DNA from: Phaeosaccion multiseriatum
Lineage: Eukaryota; Protista; Ochrophyta, other classes
DNA: 64,000 nucleotides
Direction: 5' to 3'
NCBI GenBank assembly: GCA_965112735.1
Contig: OZ218951.1
Location: 4,526,001-4,590,000 of the forward strand
The notes below the pieces were generated by a model. That model saw only the letters and a program-made list of their open reading frames with translations, was not told where the DNA came from and did not search any database. The stretch's first letter is position 1. Each line of letters begins with the position of its first letter. Position numbers and translations under genes: made by a program. Positions 170 to 48,940 of this stretch are shown here, in pieces.

Positions 170-1827
170 TTGCATGAGTGCCATTATCTCTGCCAACCTG
201 CCCCCTGCCGCACTCTCCCCGTCGTCGTCATTGTCGAAGAGCTGGATGCCCCGCTCGGGGTCGAAGCAGCGATAGGCCATGATGTTGTGAGTGGCTCGTG
301 AGACCTTGTTGTTTGTCAGGAGGGACTCCAGAGCGAGCTCGACCTGCATGGAAGGTGGGTGGGTGGGTGGGGGGGAGGGGGAAGTGGGGGGAGTGAAGGG
401 TGGGAAGGGAAAAGGGAAGGAGAGGGGAGAGGGGAAGGTGAAGTGGGGGGAGGGAGGGAGGGCAAGGGAAAGGGGAAGGAGAGGGGAGAGAGGAAGGTGA
501 AGTGGGGGGAGGGAGGGAGGGGAAGCGAAAGGGGAAGGATAGGGGAGAGGGGAAGGCGAAGTGGGGGGAGGGAGGGAGGGAGGAGTGGTTCAGAGTGCGA
601 GTGCGTAGCTTGTATGTACCGGTGTGTGTGAAATACACACAGAGAGAGAGGTAGATAGACAGATAGAGAGGCAGAGAGAGAGAGAGAGAGGGAAAGGTGG
701 CCGACGCTCACAAAGTCTGCAAGGGCGGAAGAGAGGGAGACCAGATAGAAAAACTCCCACGCACGCACGCACCCACCTGTCTCTCGTTGGTGACCGCAAC
801 GAGGTGGGCTTGAAAGGTGCTCTTGCGATCAGTGAAGGGCTTGCCGTGCTTGAACATTTCAATTGGAATCAAGTCATCGCTGCCATTTGCAAAGACTCCA
901 GTCCCATCAGCAGGCGACTGCTGCGGCTGCTGGTGCCACCCCAACGTTTGGTCCTTCTCGTCTGCCTCTCCCCTCCTGCTCCCCTCATCGCCCTCTCCCT
1001 GCGCTGCTGCATCGCTTCCGTTCTCTAGCTCTTGCTCCTCCTCCTGCTGCTGCTGCTGCTGCTGTTGAGGGTCTCCCTGTTCTTCATCTTCAGGCGGGGT
1101 ACATAAGCCCATCTCCAGCAGCTTTTCCCGCACCATCTCCACAACCACATAGATAACAACACTCCCCTTGTTTTCCTGGACCAGAGCTTCTACAGCTGTG
1201 TGTCGGGCCCGGCGGAGGCAGGGAGGGGGGGGGGGGGAGCGAGGAGCCCAGAGACGCAGAGGTAGACACACTTTTAAGTCAAGACGAAAGAGGAACACAC
1301 TCAACCAGACGACAGAGAGGAGTGGTAGGGGTTCATCATTCCTCCACCCTGCGCTAAGTCTCTCGCCTCTCTATCTCTGCCCCTGCATTTCGGTGGCCCA
1401 TTCTCTTCTTCCTCTGTCTCCATCACCTTGGTTGAGGATTGTGAGATTGCTTCGACTCACGGCTACGGAGCGCACCAGGCACTCTCTTGGACTCGAAGCG
1501 CTGGGGTAGTCCGGGCCCAAGCGTAGGCATATGCGCACGAGGGGAGAGGCAGCGTTAACGATCACCTCCACCTGAGGGTTGGAGTCGGAGAGAGCACAGA
1601 GGCAGGCTGCTTTTAGGGTAGAGGGACAGCTTTAATTTAATCTTCGTGGGTGCTTCCTGTTGGGAGAACGCTTCCACGCTGCACCTTCTCCCTACCTTAC
1701 GCTCTCCAGCCTCCCCTTCCTCCACGCTGGCGTCGTCTCCATAGATGTACTGCAGGGCCTCGATCTCTTCGAGCTGCTCCTCGTTCACCACGACGGCACC
1801 ATCTTCGCGACTTACTTCAGCGGCCAT
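170..1827 (-). CDS. IMPACT: IMPACT family protein (RWD + UPF0029/YigZ domain), multi-exon, 3' end probably left of the window
   Basis: ATG at 1827 (MAAEV..EEQLEEIEALQYIYG, RWD start). Exon ~1427-1570 has LGPDYPS (RWD YPxxxP-like), exon ~777-1190 has PFTDRKSTFQAH, exon 170-343 has ATHNIMAYR..DDDGESAAGGRL, with GT-AG boundaries. The expected VVVSRW..GG exon is not seen in the window. Confidence 0.88.
375..582. repeat. Intronic purine-rich degenerate tandem repeat (~60 bp unit)
   Basis: Recurring GGGGAGAGGGGAAGGTGAAGTGGGGGGAGGGAGGG-like blocks inside the IMPACT intron. Confidence 0.7.
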
Positions 1828-2429
1828 CCCATGCACTGCGGATGAGGGACGTCCAAGGGCTTCTCCAGGCGGCGAGCGAGCTGCTGGTGGCTCCAAGGGC
1901 GGCTTCCAGGATCCTTTATAGGAAAAAGGGGGAGAATGACGGAAATCCCATTGGTGATACAGGACGCCGCCAGTCTTTAGACTCCCTTCAGTCTTCAGGC
2001 CCTTCTTCAAAGAGCTGCTGGAGCAATCCTTACCCCCCGCCCATGCTTTTACATACCCCCCCCCCCCCGCGTTGACGGGACAGCAGTGAGCGGCTTCTGC
2101 ACAAGTCACGCTCCACACTTGCTCCACCGGAGGGAAAGAGACAGAGAGTTAAGGATGGATGCCTGGGTGCTGATGGAGGGGGTTGGAAGGCGGAAGGCCG
2201 GCGTTGGGTCGATGTAACGGGGGGGATTTACTTTGTGACATGTTGCGAGCGCAGGCAGGCCAGCGAAGCCCTCTTGGCCACAGCTGCAACGGTACCACGT
2301 CACTCTCACGAGATGGCAGCGCCGGCTGAAGCCAGTCAGGCAGAGCCGGCCGCCCTGGTGGGATGGAAGGGTAAGTGTCAGAGCCAGCAGCCGTGATATA
2401 CACACCCAGGGCCAGCCATCCCCGGCCTC

Positions 2430-3211
2430 ATGATTAGAACATCAGCCTGTGCCGCAGTCCTGACCCTTTCTTGTTGTGCCGCCGCCTTTCTCTACCCCTC
2501 CGCCTCTCGGCACCAGCGAAGCTCCAACCATGGGAGAATGCCTCGTCCTCCACGCAACCGTGGCAGATGTTGCCTTTTTGGGTCCCCACGACTACAACGC
2601 GCCAGCGGCGCGAAGCATAAGTGAGCAAGAAGATTGGAATTGATGGGCACCGGCTCTTCCATCTTTCGCGAACTACAAAACGCAGTGGATTTTCAACAGG
2701 ATGGCCGTGCAAGAATCACGGGAGCTGGTGAAGTTTAACTCCACGTGCAACGTCAGAACCGGGGACAGCGATGACATTCAATGGGAACGTTGCCGCCATT
2801 GCAATCGTAACGCAGTGCCTGCCTACAAGCGGACAATCATCACAACGGAGCCGGGGGTCCTTATGCTTACACTCAAGCGCTCCTCTTTTCATAAAAATAA
2901 ATGAAAAGAGGAGCGCTTGAGCGTAAGCATGAGGACCCCCGGTGCCGTTTCTATGAGTGTCCGCTTGTAGGCAGGCACTGCGTTACGATTGCATGGCGGC
3001 AACGTTCCCATTGAATGTCATCGCTGTCCTCACGTCAAGCAAGGTGAGGGTGAGCTGACGAAGGAGTGTGTTGCTCGCTTTTTTCTTAATGCGTCCGTCC
3101 CCCCTCTTCCTCTGTCGCCCGCCCACTCACCAGGTGACGAAGCCGGTCACTTTTCCCGAGACCCTTTTCCTTCCTGTGCAGACAGATCCGGCCGATGACT
3201 CCACCGAGGAG
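2430..3211 (+). pseudogene. Spliced fragment of a ubiquitin-specific protease (peptidase C19/USP), truncated by an inverted duplication
   Basis: ORF 2701-2904 RCRHCNRNAVPAYKRTIITTEPGVLMLTLKR fits the USP CxxC..AxK..I..PxVLx(H)LKRF box. After the hairpin, SSK|VTKPVTFPETL (intron ~3044-3133) fits the following K..VxFP.xL motif. Exon 2430-2620 (hydrophobic N-terminus) splices in frame to 2700. No Cys box or His box seen. Confidence 0.65.
2763..3029. repeat. Long inverted repeat / hairpin 1 (arms 2763-2892 and 2901-3029, 8 nt loop)
   Basis: GGACAGCGATGACATTC...CTCTTTTCAT-AAAAATAA-ATGAAAAGAG...GAATGTCATCGCTGTCC; about 130 bp arms with 8 substitutions and one 1-nt indel. Confidence 0.97.
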
Positions 3212-3491
3212 GTACGTGTGTGTGCGTGTGTGGGTGTGGGTGTGGTGGGTGTGGGGGGCGGCGGCCGTGTGTGTGTGCGCCGCTCTGCCTGAAGGCAACG
3301 AAGAACATAACGGCCCCGGACCCTCCCCCGTCTCCCTTTTTTCAAGATCTTTGCCTTCAGATACTGTAGCTCCTATCTGCTCCCTCTTTCTCACTACCGT
3401 CTCTCAGAAGGCTGGCTGGGAGCCTTGTGTCAAACTCCCCGTCCCTTCCTCTCGAACCTTACTCTGCCCACTCTTGCTGCCCTGCCTGCAG

Positions 3492-4187
3492 AGCCAGGGA
3501 GGTGCGACCGGCATGTCACCCGAGTCAAAGAAGCGCGACACTACATCGGGCAATTCCTTGCGCTGACTCTTTGATACGGCGATTCTCGGAGAAGTGGAGC
3601 TCCGCATGGGGTTGGTGTTCTTGCCGCGCTTGATGCGGAGCTCCACCTCTCCGAGAATTGCAGTATCAAAGAGGCAGCGCATGGGGGAGCTGCGGCAGAG
3701 CCTCAAGCAGGTGAGCTGCGAGTAGCTAGCTTCCTTGTCTGGCCTCTGTCTTCCTGTTCTCGTTGCTTGCTCTTGCTTCGCTCCTTCTTGCTTGTCTTGC
3801 TTAACTCCTCAGCTCGGCTCAGGCCAGCCATGCATGATCTCCTCCTGCCTCGCTCCTCCTCCACAAGCAACAACACCAACTGTCTGCCCCTGCCTGGCTG
3901 CTGTACCCAACACCACCCGCCGCCACCACCGCAGGCCAACGACAACGGCTTCGCCTGGGGATAGGCAACCACGCGCCCGACCGTACTTCTGGGGCAAGAC
4001 GAGAGCTACACCACCTCATCATGCTGCGTCCCTGCCTGCTCAGTCATCCTTCGCAACGTCGGCATCGTCAAAATCGTCCACTTGCACCGAGTGCGGCCGC
4101 GACCAGCACCGAGACGCCTCCGCTGCGAGAGCCATTTTAGTCTGCGCCCTGTACGAGCACAAAGAGTTTTTCGTTTTTCGACTGTAA
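3492..4187 (+). pseudogene. Degenerate Fanzor/TnpB-like RNA-guided nuclease, C-terminal half (RuvC-II region, zinc ribbon, RuvC-III), intron-containing
   Basis: Conceptual translation: RVKEARHYIGQFLALT/fs ~3569/FDTAILGE..MGELRQSLKQ | intron 3711-3934 | ANDNGFAWG*ATTRPTVLLGQDESYTTSSCCVPACSVILRNVG/fs 4064/SSKSSTCTECGRDQHRDASAARAIL. Motif order and spacing match H..A.FL..FD.I, ExYTS..C..C and CxxCG...(D/H)RDxNAAxNI. Two frameshifts and a TAG at 3962-3964; no RuvC-I (D-P-G) motif found. Confidence 0.78.
3559..3681. repeat. Inverted repeat / hairpin 2 (arms 3559-3607 and 3633-3681, 25 nt loop)
   Basis: TGCGCTGACTCTTTGATACGGCGATTCTCGGAGAAGTGGAGCTCCGCAT pairs with ATGCGGAGCTCCACCTCTCCGAGAATTGCAGTATCAAAGAGGCAGCGCA; 4 mismatches in 49 bp. 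Confidence 0.95.
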
Positions 4188-4255
4188 CTAACTCTCGAAA
4201 AACTCTTTGTGCTCGTAAAGAGCGCAGGCCAAAATGGTTCTCGCAGCGGAGGCGT
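4114..4255. repeat. Inverted repeat / hairpin 3 (arms 4114-4173 and 4196-4255, 22 nt loop) over the Fanzor-like 3' end
   Basis: ACGCCTCCGCTGCGAGAGCC...AAAGAGTTTTTCG pairs with CGAAAAACTCTTT...CTCGCAGCGGAGGCGT; 5 mismatches in 60 bp. Confidence 0.95.
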
Positions 4256-4359
4256 GAAAACAACACGGAATCCCCTGATTTGCCCCGGAAAACTCGCTCC
4301 AAATTCCACATCCATCCTCCCTCCCTCCCTCTCGCCTGAAGGAGAGAGAGGGTAAAAGA

Positions 4360-4837
4360 TACAAACGGAGGGAGGAAGGCATGCTTGGACGAGCCCCTCG
4401 ATGAGGCAGGAACTATTGCCCTGTACTCAGCTATGGAAAAGCAGAGGGGCGACATCATTACTCTTCTGCTGCAAGAGGGGGGATCGCCGAATACTCGACA
4501 CCCTTGGGGGGGCTGTACTCCGCTTGTGCTTGCATGCGCTCGTGGGAATGCGGCGATCGTACAACAGCTTCTCTCTGCTGGACCTACATCGGGGCGGCGC
4601 TGGAACTACTCGCAGGAGGATCCTCACTGGCGAAGGCTCTGACAGAAGCGCGAGAGCTCAACAATGCAGGAGCTTCAATTCCTTCTGGCCGCGGACAGGC
4701 AGCACTTTGCGTCACAAAGCGCGTTGGACGTGATGCGGGGCACTGACCGTCTCTTTGGCAAGGAAGGGAGGCTGAAGGTGTCGCAGAGAGAGGTCAGCCC
4801 TGAGGTGCTGCAGGACGTGGCGGAGGAGATGGCATGA
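4360..4837 (+). pseudogene. Ankyrin-repeat pseudogene, internally deleted paralogue of the gene at 47616-48940
   Basis: NGGRKACLDEPLDE..RGDIITLLLQEGGSPN..GCTPL, then a jump to SGAALELL..SLAKALT..HFASQSALDVMRGTDRLFGKEGRLKVSQREVSPEVLQDVAEEMA*. Nearly the same N- and C-terminal peptides as ORF 47616-48650; central repeats missing; frameshifts. Confidence 0.88.
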
Positions 4838-5701
4838 CGAGCTCACCTCCCCGCTCTGCAATCCGACGATGCAAGGGAGAGTAGTCAACCCCAAAAGTAG
4901 AGGCCAGATCGATCTCGATGGTATTATAAGGCTAAACTCCTCTCTCCTGATACATACACAGCTATACCTGAACTATCCATAAAAACACGTTTCTTGAGAG
5001 CACTTGGATCGGCGCGGGACCCGGCCCGCTCCGCCCCTCTCGCCAAAGCACCAAAGCAGCAAGGGGAGGAAAGGAGGGCAGTACGGCGCCTCCAAGAAGA
5101 AAAGAGAAAGAAACTGTCCGTCCTCCTTGCTAGAGAGAAAGAAACCGTCTGTCCTCCTTGCTTGCATGCCTGGCCCACGGAGCGCGAGCTCTCCTGTTTT
5201 TCTCTCTAGGCCTTTTCTTCCTTCCCTAATTTCTTTCATTCCTTTTCCCCTTCCTTCCTTCCTTCCTTCCGCTCTTCCCAACCAATAAATAATGCGCCGC
5301 CAGCCCCCCATCGCCGCGACATTATACAGTCAAATTCTTCGTGCGCGCATTCACCTGCCCACTCACCCACCCGCCTGTGCTGGCTGCCGGCAGTCGCATT
5401 CGGGTTGATTGCTGCCTCCGGATCCTGAGTGCTCACAGGTGCCTCTCACTCTCCATACATGCCAACCAGCAAGCCCCCCCCCCCCCAGCACCCTCTTCCG
5501 GGCCTTTTGGGGAACTTCTTGCTGTGTGCTGCCTTCTTTGCTTGACTCTTGTGCTTGACACTTGTGCTTCCCTGAAAGGGTTCATTGGGCCTCTCTGCCG
5601 TCTCCGCTCTGCCTTAAGTCAAAACCCCCACTAAGGACTGGTGGTGGTTCATAACAAGGACGGCAGCTGACTGGCATGTCGTGACGCTGGACTACTGAGA
5701 A

Positions 5702-47190: not shown

Positions 47191-47615
47191 TACAATAGCG
47201 GCCTGAAGGAGGAGGAGTTTAATGAGCACTCGCGCATGAATTGAGGCAATTGATGTACGATTTCTTTAGTTTTTTTGCCTTCTCCGCCAAGGCCTGCCTG
47301 AGGACCCTCCTTCGCCTTGGGCCGGTCACCTCTTGGGCCTGCCTCGCCGCTCCCTGGGTCTTTCACGTGTCTTTTACTGCAAGTATTGGGGCCCTCCTCC
47401 TTTCAAGGTAAATTTTAAATTATGCATTTTTCACTTGGTGTCAGGACAGGGGGTGTGGGGGTGGCTGCCTGTGTGGTGTGCATGTGGGTAGGGATGTGTG
47501 TGAGTTACAGTGGGGTACCGCCTCATCTTCATCCGTCATTATTATTGGCTCAGACCCTCGCTACCCCACCTTCCCAACGCCCTGACCACACCACAGGCGA
47601 GAGGTGCCCCTTTCA

Positions 47616-48940
47616 TCATGCCATCTCCTCCGCCACCTCCTGCAGCACCTCAGGGCTAAGCTCTCTCTGCGACACCTTCAGCCTTCCTTCCTTGCCAAAG
47701 AGACGGTCAGTGCCCCGCATCAGGTCCAACGCGCTTTGTGACGCGAAGTGATGCCTGTTCGCGGCCAGAAGGAGCTCTACAATACGGGCTTCATCGATAC
47801 ACCCTCGTGCCTGAGTCAGGGCCTTTGCCAGTGAGGCCCCTCCTGAGAGCAGCTCCAGCGCCGCCCCGCTGTGGCCCTGACTTGCCGCGATAGCCAAAGG
47901 CGTTGCAACAGCGTGTTTGCCCCCATTGTCAGGATCAGCCCCCACAGACAGCAGCACATGGATCACTGCCTCACGGCCCGCCTTAGCAGCCATGAGCAAA
48001 GCTGTGTACCCCTGAGAACACTGAATCTCCACATCGGCACCTCCTGAGACGAGTTCCTCCACGACACGAGCATAACCACAGTGAGATGCCAAGTGTATCG
48101 CTCCAGCCCCGGTACCACTGATCGCATTCACCTCTGCACCAGCCGTGAGCAGCTTTCGCAAAACACTTCGGTGTCCATTGGCAGACGCAAACATCAACGC
48201 AGTACTGCTCCTCTCAGTGCTACGCCTCTCGAGGTCAGCGCCGGCTGTGATGAGCTGATCCACCACAATGCCATGCCCTTTCTGGCTTGCCGCGCAAAGC
48301 GGGGACCATCCGCTGTGGACTCCCAAATTCACATCTGCCCCGGAGGTAAGCAGCAGCTGTGTGACCCTGTGACGTCCGTATCTTGCGGCAATGCACAAGG
48401 GGGTGCAGCCATTTGACGGGTTCAGAATATTCGGCGACGCCCCCTCTTGCAGCAAAAGAGCAATGATATCACCCCTCCCCTCTTCCACGGCTACGTGCAG
48501 GGCAGGAAGCCCTGTCTCATCGAGAGGCTCGTCCAAGCATGCCTTTCTCCCGCCGTTCTTAGCGACGACGCCCCTCACAGCCGCTTGCACCCTTTGGGCG
48601 CTCTCACCATTGGCGATGGCTTGAACCAGGCGGTTAGCCTGCAATAGCAAGAGGAGAGGGAGGGAGGGAGGGAGGGAGGGAGGGAGGGAGGGAGGGAGGG
48701 AGGGAGGGAGGGAGGGAGGGAGGGAGGGAGGGAGGGAGGGAGGGAGGGAGGGAGGGAGGGAGGGAGGGAGGGAGGGAGGGAGGGAGGGAGGGAGGGAGGG
48801 AGGGAGGGAGGGAGGGAAGAGAGGGGGTGAGGGAGGGAGACGTCGAGGAAAGGACAGGCGAAGGACTCCGTGTATGAACCCACCTCGCTACTGAAGGTCC
48901 TCTGCATGCTAAAGAAAGAGGTCGAGGAGGAGGAGCTCAT
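47616..48940 (-). CDS. Ankyrin-repeat protein (about 7 repeats), two exons
   Basis: Repeated G.TPL..AA..GH..V...LL..GAD motifs in ORF 47616-48650; short first exon MSSSSSTSFFSMQRTFSSE|GT upstream of a (GGGA)n intron. Confidence 0.92.
48655..48817. repeat. (GGGA)n microsatellite in the ankyrin gene intron
   Basis: Read directly. Confidence 0.97.

Follow-up and report, generated by a model that had tools for sequence, protein, structure and literature searches.

Probable relic of a Fanzor-type nuclease gene in a spliced patchwork transcript of Phaeosaccion multiseriatum

This analysis indicates that a short segment of the Phaeosaccion multiseriatum genome, positions 3992-4136 of the window, is probably (at roughly four chances in five) a dead fragment of a gene for an RNA-guided nuclease of the TnpB superfamily, of the Fanzor or pro-Fanzor (alternative-glutamate) type. 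The window is the whole stretch of DNA that was analysed, 64,000 nt of assembly GCA_965112735.1 (contig OZ218951.1, positions 4,526,001-4,590,000, forward strand), and all positions are given within it. The recognisable remainder would comprise only the last ~48 codons of the gene, carrying the alternative RuvC-II glutamate, the zinc-ribbon (TNB) domain and the RuvC-III aspartate motif. It appears to lie in a spliced, presumably non-coding transcript of low expression that has at least three phase-0 exons, the last of which contains the fragment. This transcript can be regarded as a patchwork of gene pieces, in which two unassigned exons stand between a USP-like fragment and the Fanzor tail, and a truncated copy of an ankyrin-family gene follows. 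The name Fanzor, rather than TnpB, is suggested solely by the position of the alternative glutamate and by the eukaryotic setting. As judged from its sequence, the relic is ordinary genomic debris and is incapable of cutting DNA.

The tail comprises the following features.
3962-3964, plus strand: TAG in frame, after the intron and ahead of the homology, from the translation; CAG in a second copy or allele
3992-4136, plus strand: demonstrable TnpB/Fanzor homology (end of RuvC-II, zinc ribbon/TNB, RuvC-III), ~48 codons in two frames, from profile matches
4001-4003, plus strand: putative alternative RuvC-II glutamate (GAG) of DESYTT, six residues before the first cysteine
4022-4039, plus strand: first cysteine cluster, CCVPAC, which is not CxxC; first zinc ligand pair damaged
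4058-4068 (near 4064), plus strand: 1-nt frameshift site between the zinc-ribbon halves, from the translations; the profile score doubles when the frames are joined
4083-4115, plus strand: second CxxC (CTEC, 4083-4094), a glycine and then the RuvC-III aspartate (GAC, 4113-4115), from sequence, profile, regular expression and BLASTP
4185-4187, plus strand: stop codon closing the relic frame

The piece that follows the intron, ANDNGFAWG-TAG-ATTRP..QDESYTTSSCCVPAC..NVG, is read in the frame of 3494 and reaches 4063. After the shift near 4064, SSKSSTCTECGRDQHRDASAARAIL continues in the frame of 3492 to the stop at 4185-4187. A sequence-only reading had joined these strings, together with others further upstream, into one nuclease; the strings that it quoted are present, and the codons that it gave for the glutamate and the aspartate are exact. 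Its statement that no single open reading frame shows the motif chain was right in that the chain spans three frames, but the zinc ribbon's second half is encoded within the frame open from 3735 to 4187. The glutamate is followed by SYTTSS and then by the first zinc-finger cysteine at 4022-4024, which is the spacing of the alternative glutamate, as had been proposed. A glutamate just ahead of the zinc finger is the rearranged RuvC-II residue of Fanzors and pro-Fanzor TnpBs (PMC10711439, PMC10530073, PMC11832414), which have been defined by the pattern DPG x(120,160) E x6 CxxC x(12,18) CxxC x(4,8) D (PMC10711439). The E-x6-C...CxxC-x6-D spacing of the tail agrees with this expression apart from the first CxxC: 15 residues (including the X at the frameshift) separate CCVPAC from CTEC, within the range of 12-18, and six residues then lead to the aspartate, within that of 4-8. 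As CCVPAC is CxxxC or CxxxxC, the strict Fanzor expression fails, and the tail passes only with C.{2,4}C. Similarly, two 2-residue gaps were needed at CCVPAC when the tail was aligned by BLASTP to the CSCC of a phage TnpB. The RuvC-III motif reads RDASAARAIL, with serine in place of the asparagine of RDxNAA, and the other atypical residues listed beforehand (YTT and the CCVPAC spacing) were also found.

The joined tail, with X at the frameshift, matched Pfam PF07282 as its sole family, at 28.4 bits (E 1.9e-6, profile positions 21-60 of 60). This is above the curated gathering threshold of 26.3 bits, although such significant scores need a frameshift join chosen with the hypothesis in mind. In NCBIfam, guided_TnpB (NF040570) was matched at E 2.7e-6 over positions 340-387 of 389, the extreme C-terminus of the model, and IS607_TnpB at E 0.015; full-length TnpB models were matched by the last ~49 residues only. 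The profile check that had been suggested thus came out positive for the tail, and the identification as a Fanzor/TnpB remnant holds for this C-terminal part, while the upstream motifs gave no TnpB signal.

The exons preceding the tail are as follows.
2516-3043, plus strand: exon b, with a possible USP/UCH-like coding fragment at ~2644-2901; joint 2369>2516 in X5
3134-3211, plus strand: exon c, 26 codons, phase 0/0; joint 3041>3132 (cut +2; 3043|3134) in X5, same transcript as exon d
3492-3710, plus strand: exon d, phase 0/0, with 73 codons read in the frame of 3492 and a TGA at 3564-3566; X5 contig 3490-3706
3711-3934, plus strand: spliceosomal intron of 224 nt, GT..AG, phase 0 on both sides; joint 3706>3931 (cut +4) in an X5 contig

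Run X5 is labelled 'DNA?', but we take it to be RNA because it shows exon-only coverage and three GT..AG joints (2369>2516, 3043|3134 and 3710|3935), all absent from the genomic runs. The GT-AG intron of host type that had been predicted is real: it is spliced out in X5 contigs, X5 has no depth in 3756-3846 inside it, and the exact joint 3710|3935 links the frames of 3492 and 3494 in phase 0. A single continuous frame runs through exons c, d and e, the last of which contains the tail. The transcript is divergent from an IMPACT-like gene (RWD and UPF0029 domains), which, like the ankyrin-family neighbour, is an intron-containing eukaryotic gene. Together with the spliced introns and the host-like G+C of the tail fragment, these neighbours place the relic in a eukaryotic nuclear genome. 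On its other side, the relic is joined to one further piece.
4364-4837, plus strand: ankyrin-family copy (Pfam Ank E 1e-7), 5'-truncated, internally deleted and broken by stops
This copy shows 78-84% DNA identity to an intact member at 47613-48557 on the minus strand, and the family is very high-copy, with depth up to several hundred times baseline and loose ends at 4364.

With regard to the upstream exons, none of the comparisons extended the homology. Exons c and d, as joined or unjoined pieces, added no score against the Pfam and NCBIfam TnpB models. They likewise gave no signal with a family HMM trained on 120 homologues of the best-matching phage TnpB, and no TnpB signal in the ESM Atlas. 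Smith-Waterman alignment of the upstream exons to two alternative-glutamate TnpBs gave p values of 0.32 and 0.98 over 2,000 shuffles. Accordingly, FDTAILG..LRQSLKQ (3570-3710, frame of 3492), which the earlier reading had assigned to the nuclease, resembled neither the TnpB profiles nor these two proteins. HYIGQFLAL (3539-3565, frame of 3494), also assigned to it, is out of frame and is followed by a stop at 3572-3574 in both arms of a hairpin. No DPG or D-hydrophobic-G was present in any plus-strand frame of 1500-4000, and the RuvC-I aspartate in DPG 120-160 residues before the glutamate was not found in this truncated fragment. The glycine of AILGEV (3588-3590) lies 63 residues before the alternative glutamate, or ~37-46 if the inverted insertion is discounted, as compared with ~45-50 residues for the glycine or proline at the canonical glutamate position; the stretch aligns no better than shuffles. 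ITTEPGV (~2850) was rejected as a degenerate RuvC-I DPG strand, being in a stretch that is USP/UCH-like in the ESM Atlas, without TnpB signal and out of frame with exons c-e. The exon b fragment fell in UCH clusters of the ESM Atlas at 0.91-0.93 with low shared-feature counts, and its search against Pfam and the PDB was blank; its USP identity is a possible lead only. Acquisition of introns by Fanzor genes has been described (PMC10530073). The intron found here precedes the demonstrable homology by 19 codons and, since exons c and d lack a TnpB signal, its interruption of a Fanzor-derived coding sequence stays putative. We infer at about even odds that exons d and e once belonged to one coding sequence with a Fanzor ending.

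The locus also contains three fold-back hairpins, the only true inverted repeats in the 64 kb.
2763-3029, unstranded: hairpin 1, within exon b, with an 8-nt loop between arms of ~130 nt; 0 differences in the genomic contigs that span its apex
3556-3684, unstranded: hairpin 2, within exon d, with a 25-nt loop between 52-nt arms; spanned by contigs of X1, X2, X4 and X5
4114-4255, unstranded: hairpin 3, 60-nt arms and a 22-nt loop; crossed by contigs of X1, X2 and X5

Hairpin 2 has the string FDTAILGEVELR on both strands. The TGA at 3564-3566 in its left arm corresponds to TGC (Cys) in the right arm, and this comparison identifies the frame of 3492 as the former coding frame. The left arm of hairpin 3 is formed by the final 20 codons of the tail and the right arm by an inverted copy after the stop, so that the 3' end of the relic is rearranged. 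Differences between arms fall at codon position 3 in 4 of 5 cases in exon d and in 11 of 18 overall (P 0.014), which pure in-situ neutral decay does not predict. Hairpin 3 was considered as part of a guide-RNA scaffold and set aside, as two equivalent hairpins of unrelated sequence occur at the same locus; to our knowledge, a 60-bp near-perfect stem is unlike omega-RNA or fRNA scaffolds. The hairpins would be most simply accounted for as mutational scars of template switching during replication or repair in a dead locus, and we favour scars over functional elements.

A different view is that the locus acts as RNA, the three long hairpins, built from coding sequence (a USP-like gene, exon d and the Fanzor tail), being diced to small RNAs that silence intact paralogues or Fanzor elements, in the manner of maize Mu killer, an inverted duplication that silences MuDR. 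All three hairpins lie in exons of one transcript, two of them crossed end to end by X5 contigs, and they are clustered in 1.5 kb. The stems of hairpins 2 and 3 are predicted to be very stable as RNA (-101.9 kcal/mol, z -12.7, and -104.4 kcal/mol, z -17, respectively). In addition, the arm differences are enriched at synonymous sites (10 of 18, P 0.0045), a pattern that would fit antisense arms derived from other copies under constraint. Nevertheless, transition differences are split evenly between G.U-compatible and A.C-type (5 vs 5), with no sign of selection to keep the stems, and all 11 third-position differences are GC<->AT, which needs no selection, as GC-rich third positions would decay in this way once a gene is dead. 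The Rfam matches are to generic miRNA-hairpin families, all far under the gathering scores, and reflect hairpin shape only. An RNA role is consequently considered unlikely. Slightly less likely again is that the transcript would be a natural hairpin-RNA gene, a tamer of the Mu killer kind that silences Fanzor-carrying elements and the other source genes; if it were, the synonymous excess would imply that the antisense arms had been captured from other, still functional copies. A hairpin-RNA function would be compatible with a relic origin of the tail.

As to the origin of the tail, it could alternatively derive from a prokaryotic or phage alternative-glutamate TnpB (IS200/IS605 or IS607) that was acquired horizontally and then broken, outside any resident Fanzor lineage. 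The sequence relatives retrieved are bacterial and phage TnpBs only. A tblastn search against phages returned 95 records; 10 of the 12 rows listed fall on transposase/TnpB genes, with 42-44% identity for the best among them, and the best listed relative, ISPa83-like in a Ralstonia phage, reaches 42-45% over 56-60 residues. The PDB sequence search gave only weak matches, to Cas12m and LaTranC (E 0.3-0.9), with no solved Fanzor among them. However, the collections searched hold almost no eukaryotic Fanzors, which makes this comparison one-sided, and the G+C of the fragment is that of the host. Moreover, the tail is read in frame with the phase-0 exons that precede it in a spliced transcript of the host. 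We regard such a transfer as improbable and prefer descent from a Fanzor or pro-Fanzor-type gene.

Chance resemblance, in which a cysteine-rich stretch of GC-rich DNA would, on joining of the frames, mimic a zinc ribbon and the RD..AA..IL after it, is more improbable still and has been largely refuted. In its favour, the frame-1 ORF alone scores only 13.7 bits (E 0.071) against PF07282, the join was driven by the hypothesis, and E rises to ~4e-3 when corrected for scanning all six frames of the window (~1,900 peptides of comparable length). Large protein libraries also gave no matches: phmmer with the 40-aa piece found 0 at E<=1e-3 among 1.84 billion representative proteins, and a word-indexed search with the joined 94-aa peptide returned no candidates. 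Viral and metagenome contigs, scanned with back-translated patterns, yielded no confirmed relative. In contrast, each half contributes ~14 bits to the same 40 consecutive PF07282 positions, in the correct order and spacing, and Pfam and NCBIfam, two independent curated libraries, agree. For the unmodified, unjoined 40-aa piece, 30 of 30 ESM Atlas clusters were PF07282 at 0.96 (183-195 shared features), where shuffled proteins reach 0.95 in about 1 in 100 cases. The tail expression has one match in the window and 0 in 200 shuffled windows, and ESYTT is identical to that of an alternative-glutamate TnpB.

The nuclease reads as dead because of two stops, a frameshift in the zinc ribbon and a broken first CxxC. 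An open frame for WED, REC and a full RuvC is absent, being interrupted by the TGA at 3564, the TAG at 3962 and the 1-nt shift near 4064. Both stops and the frameshift are present with 0 differences in contigs of two studies, including transcript-like contigs; for the frameshift site these are contigs of X1, X2 and the independent run X5, and the X4 piece listed, which spans 4003-4162, also shows 0 differences. At 3962, an X4 contig has T>C at about half depth, and the depth ratios are compatible with an allele or a paralogue. The absence of RuvC-I, WED and REC and the loss of the asparagine of RDxNAA would further bar nuclease action. It might be argued that a Fanzor gene with introns still functions here, concealed by the changes of frame and the introns, since the catalytic glutamate and aspartate codons and the second CxxC are intact and the locus is transcribed and spliced. 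Barring a further isoform, this is already refuted by the two in-frame stops and the frameshift in the transcript-like contigs themselves, by the lack of RuvC-I, WED or REC upstream and by the damaged first zinc ligand pair.

The relic, which keeps about a tenth of the protein, may serve as a marker of a past alternative-glutamate TnpB/Fanzor lineage in P. multiseriatum; degraded Fanzor copies are to be expected wherever Fanzor-bearing elements were active. By itself it would carry little weight, and only a silencing-RNA role of the hairpins, if true, would raise its value. It also illustrates that a motif chain assembled across frames may be correct only in part, as its C-terminal half is upheld here and its N-terminal half is not, and it provides a case of fold-back duplication within a dead gene.

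Among known systems, Mu killer resembles this locus in that part of a transposon-type gene has been copied in inverted orientation, is transcribed from a neighbouring promoter and forms a long hairpin. The stems of the present locus measure only 52-130 bp, and it also has hairpins of non-transposon sequence. In the case of PF07282, the Cas12f1-like TNB domain (formerly OrfB_Zn_ribbon), positions 1-20 are unmatched by the relic and the match exists only across the frameshift. Compared with Fanzors, the relic keeps only ~48 of 400-1,000 residues, lacks the DPG of RuvC-I, WED and REC, has a broken frame, and carries CCVPAC for the first CxxC and RDAS for RDxN; transposon ends and a guide-RNA region, which would overlap the 3' end, were not recognised. 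Like the relic, Fanzor1 and Fanzor2 have a TnpB-type zinc ribbon followed by the RuvC-III aspartate, a glutamate six residues ahead of the zinc finger and a location in a eukaryotic nuclear genome with a spliceosomal intron nearby. The alternative-glutamate TnpB ('TnpB2' or pro-Fanzor) of Ralstonia phage Dimitile (L001 1625-2695), which is ISPa83-like, is encoded by an intact, intronless gene (356 aa), unlike the relic, whose upstream exons fail to align to it and whose first cysteine pair needs two small gaps. The Dimitile protein has a glycine at the canonical glutamate position and its alternative glutamate 44 residues later. It shares 27 of 60 residues with the relic tail, and both have the identical ESYTT before the zinc finger and the motif CxECG....RD..AAR.IL.

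The nuclease-like tail at 3992-4136 (+) was found to come from a TnpB-superfamily nuclease of the alternative-glutamate (Fanzor-type) kind: it is a real yet ordinary dead fragment inside a spliced pseudogene patchwork. The sequence-only reading had chained an intron-containing nuclease remnant across frames at 3492-4187. All of its peptide strings are present in the translated window, and both of its catalytic coordinates are correct to the nucleotide (GAG, 4001-4003; GAC, 4113-4115). The translations also showed that its single chain requires several frames rather than one:

3539-3565, +: HYIGQFLAL, frame of 3494
3567-3710, +: LFDTAILGEVELR ... LRQSLKQ, frame of 3492
GT at 3711, AG at 3934, +: GT..AG interval between LRQSLKQ and ANDNGFAWG
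To 4063, +: ANDNGFAWG, TAG (3962-3964), ATTRP..QDESYTTSSCCVPAC..NVG, frame of 3494
To the stop at 4185-4187, +: SSKSSTCTECGRDQHRDASAARAIL onward, after a 1-nt shift, frame of 3492

Without joining, the frame-1 ORF matched PF07282 in Pfam at 13.7 bits (E 0.071, profile positions 39-60), a weak match to exactly the family predicted, the Cas12f1-like TNB, formerly OrfB zinc ribbon. When window 3965-4063 was joined to 4065 onward, with X at the frameshift, the score doubled to 28.4 bits (E 1.9e-6, positions 21-60), above the curated cut-off of 26.3 bits, and no other Pfam family was matched. After a ~1,900-fold correction for a six-frame scan of the whole window, the Pfam E-value is ~4e-3. In NCBIfam, the joined tail matched guided_TnpB (E 2.7e-6, positions 340-387 of 389) and IS607_TnpB (E 0.015). 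An ESM Atlas feature search, which involves no frame joining, was run with the 40-residue piece as it stands (window 4065-4184), and all 30 best matches were PF07282 clusters (0.96, 183-195 shared features). In phage genomes, tblastn returned 95 records; 10 of the 12 matches listed fell on transposase/TnpB genes, the best with 42-44% identity. That best match is to an ISPa83-like TnpB of Ralstonia phage Dimitile; 27 of 60 residues are identical, the string ESYTT among them. The tail regular expression occurs once in the window and in none of 200 shuffles. On these sequence comparisons, the tail is very probably homologous to TnpB/Fanzor (about 0.9).

With regard to the N-terminal half, HYIGQFLAL lies in a frame that stops at 3572-3574 in both arms of the covering hairpin. 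The frame of 3492 is the former coding frame, since four of five arm differences fall on third codon positions and the right arm has TGC (Cys) where the left has TGA. FDTAILG and LRQSLKQ lie in this frame and resemble, by eye, a G-type RuvC-II strand and the following helix. As nuclease motifs they found no support in any test: they brought no gain in Pfam or NCBIfam scores and no ESM Atlas match, an HMM built from 120 homologues of the phage TnpB that matched best left them unaligned, and their Smith-Waterman scores against two alternative-Glu TnpBs (N-terminal parts) were ordinary (p 0.32 and 0.98, 2,000 shuffles). No DPG or D-hydrophobic-G motif is present in any + frame of 1500-4000. The demonstrable relic is limited to about 48 codons because the upstream pieces fail every test for TnpB likeness. 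The earlier observation is confirmed in part and its interpretation supported in part: the C-terminal half is a genuine TnpB/Fanzor tail (PF07282, guided_TnpB), and the N-terminal half is unsupported.

The proposed GT-AG intron is real. A contig of the public sequencing run X5 carries the joint 3706>3931 (cut +4, GT..AG), and splicing at 3710|3935 links both frames in phase 0. X5 was produced in one study and the genomic-like runs X1, X2 and X4 in another. X5 has two more GT..AG joints upstream (2369>2516 and 3043|3134) and no depth inside introns; in X1, X2 and X4 the introns are covered and the joints absent. Given this exon-only coverage and three GT..AG joints missing from the genomic runs, X5 is probably a transcriptome, i.e. 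RNA, though labelled 'DNA?'. At its 5' end, the intron that separates exons c and d has a (GT)n / GTG-rich microsatellite (3215-3270), which was skipped as a repeat in the read comparison, and this hid the joint 3211|3492. Read in succession, exons c (3134-3211), d (3492-3710) and e (3935 onward) stay in a single frame, whose only breaks are TGA 3564-3566, TAG 3962-3964 and the frameshift. As the exons are frame-coherent, the odds that the intron interrupts Fanzor-derived sequence are about even.

The nuclease is dead: it lacks the greater part of the protein, carries two in-frame stops and a frameshift, the latter inside the zinc ribbon, and has a damaged first Cys pair and a lost Asn. BLASTP aligns that Cys pair to CSCC in the phage protein only with two gaps of 2 residues each, and in RDxNAA the Asn is Ser. 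The stops and frameshift recur in contigs of both studies with no differences. The genomic runs also contain, at roughly the same depth, a second version (allele or paralogue) that has CAG for TAG at 3962; it lacks one nucleotide at 3504 and is likewise broken. Its differences are densely grouped within 3435-3504, 3650 and 3941-3982 (five substitutions plus the 1-nt deletion in 70 nt; seven substitutions in 42 nt, TAG>CAG at 3962 among them). X5 has higher depth for the version with the 3504 deletion.

The 64 kb contain only three true inverted repeats, all fold-backs within exons of the patchwork transcript, found by inverted-repeat search:

2763-3029: hairpin 1
3556-3684: hairpin 2
4114-4255: hairpin 3, left arm = last 20 codons of the Fanzor tail

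Short-read contigs crossing the hairpins confirm them. FDTAILGEVELR is readable on both strands because hairpin 2 spans it. Within this hairpin, contigs of X1, X2 and X4 also contain an 'opposite strands' joint, 3608>3677, together with T>C at 3650; either the second copy has a variant form of the hairpin, or the joint is an artefact of the de Bruijn graph arising at an inverted repeat. We regard the hairpins as mutational scars of template switching. The arms could derive from different constrained copies, as their 18 differences are enriched at third codon positions (11, P 0.014) and synonymous sites (10, P 0.0045); however, all eleven third-position differences are GC<->AT, as expected from GC-rich third positions decaying in a dead gene. 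The differences are clustered (in hairpin 1, eight within 36 nt, flanked by 73 and 21 perfect positions), which could reflect short conversion tracts or GC3 decay. As RNA, the hairpins are predicted to be very stable. The arm differences give no sign of selection on the stem, since transitions split 5 to 5 between the G.U-compatible and the A.C-type. A silencing-RNA role is possible but improbable.

The relic belongs to a patchwork of pieces on the + strand. Two genes of the window bear on this context:

140-2127, -: intron-containing IMPACT-like gene (RWD domain E 4e-5, UPF0029 E 4e-8)
47616-48650, -: intact ankyrin member, 344 aa, about 8 ankyrin repeats

The patchwork transcript is divergent from the IMPACT-like gene and may share a bidirectional promoter with it, as the 5' end of that gene faces the transcript start. 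Exon b (2516-3043) may hold a USP/UCH deubiquitinase-like fragment at ~2644-2901 (+), C..C ... PGVLMLTLKRSSF, a likeness seen in ESM Atlas only (0.91-0.93, low shared-feature counts), Pfam and PDB being blank. An inverted copy of this fragment forms hairpin 1. From 4364, where loose ends lie exactly, follows a copy, truncated at the 5' end, internally deleted and broken by stops, of a very high-copy ankyrin family, whose summed contig depth (window 4302-4483, 4666-4847) exceeds the local baseline by factors from tens to several hundred. Its repeat boundaries are sharp at 4364, 4405, 4581, 4677 and 4837, and the most repeated part is the C-terminal exon, which ends in ...SPEVLQxVAEEMA.

Fanzors and the related TnpB2/pro-Fanzor proteins carry Gly or Pro at the site of the canonical RuvC-II glutamate and have an alternative glutamate 45-50 residues downstream of that site, six before the zinc finger (PMC10530073; PMC10711439; PMC11832414). 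This literature bears out the placement that the sequence-only reading had called established. The relic has the order E, six residues, Cys and, ~15 residues on, CTEC, six residues, Asp; the published regular expression fits it save for the first CxxC, which reads CCVPAC. No solved Fanzor was among the weak PDB matches. The phage TnpBs that match best have the alternative Glu too (IFVGDV ... 44 residues ... ESYTT); two phage TnpBs of the canonical type (IVHEDL, DPKYTSQ) gave weaker matches. The label Fanzor-type, given on comparison with phage TnpBs, appears justified by the alternative-Glu layout, by these phage relatives and by the setting, eukaryotic nuclear DNA with spliceosomal introns and a G+C content of ~58%.
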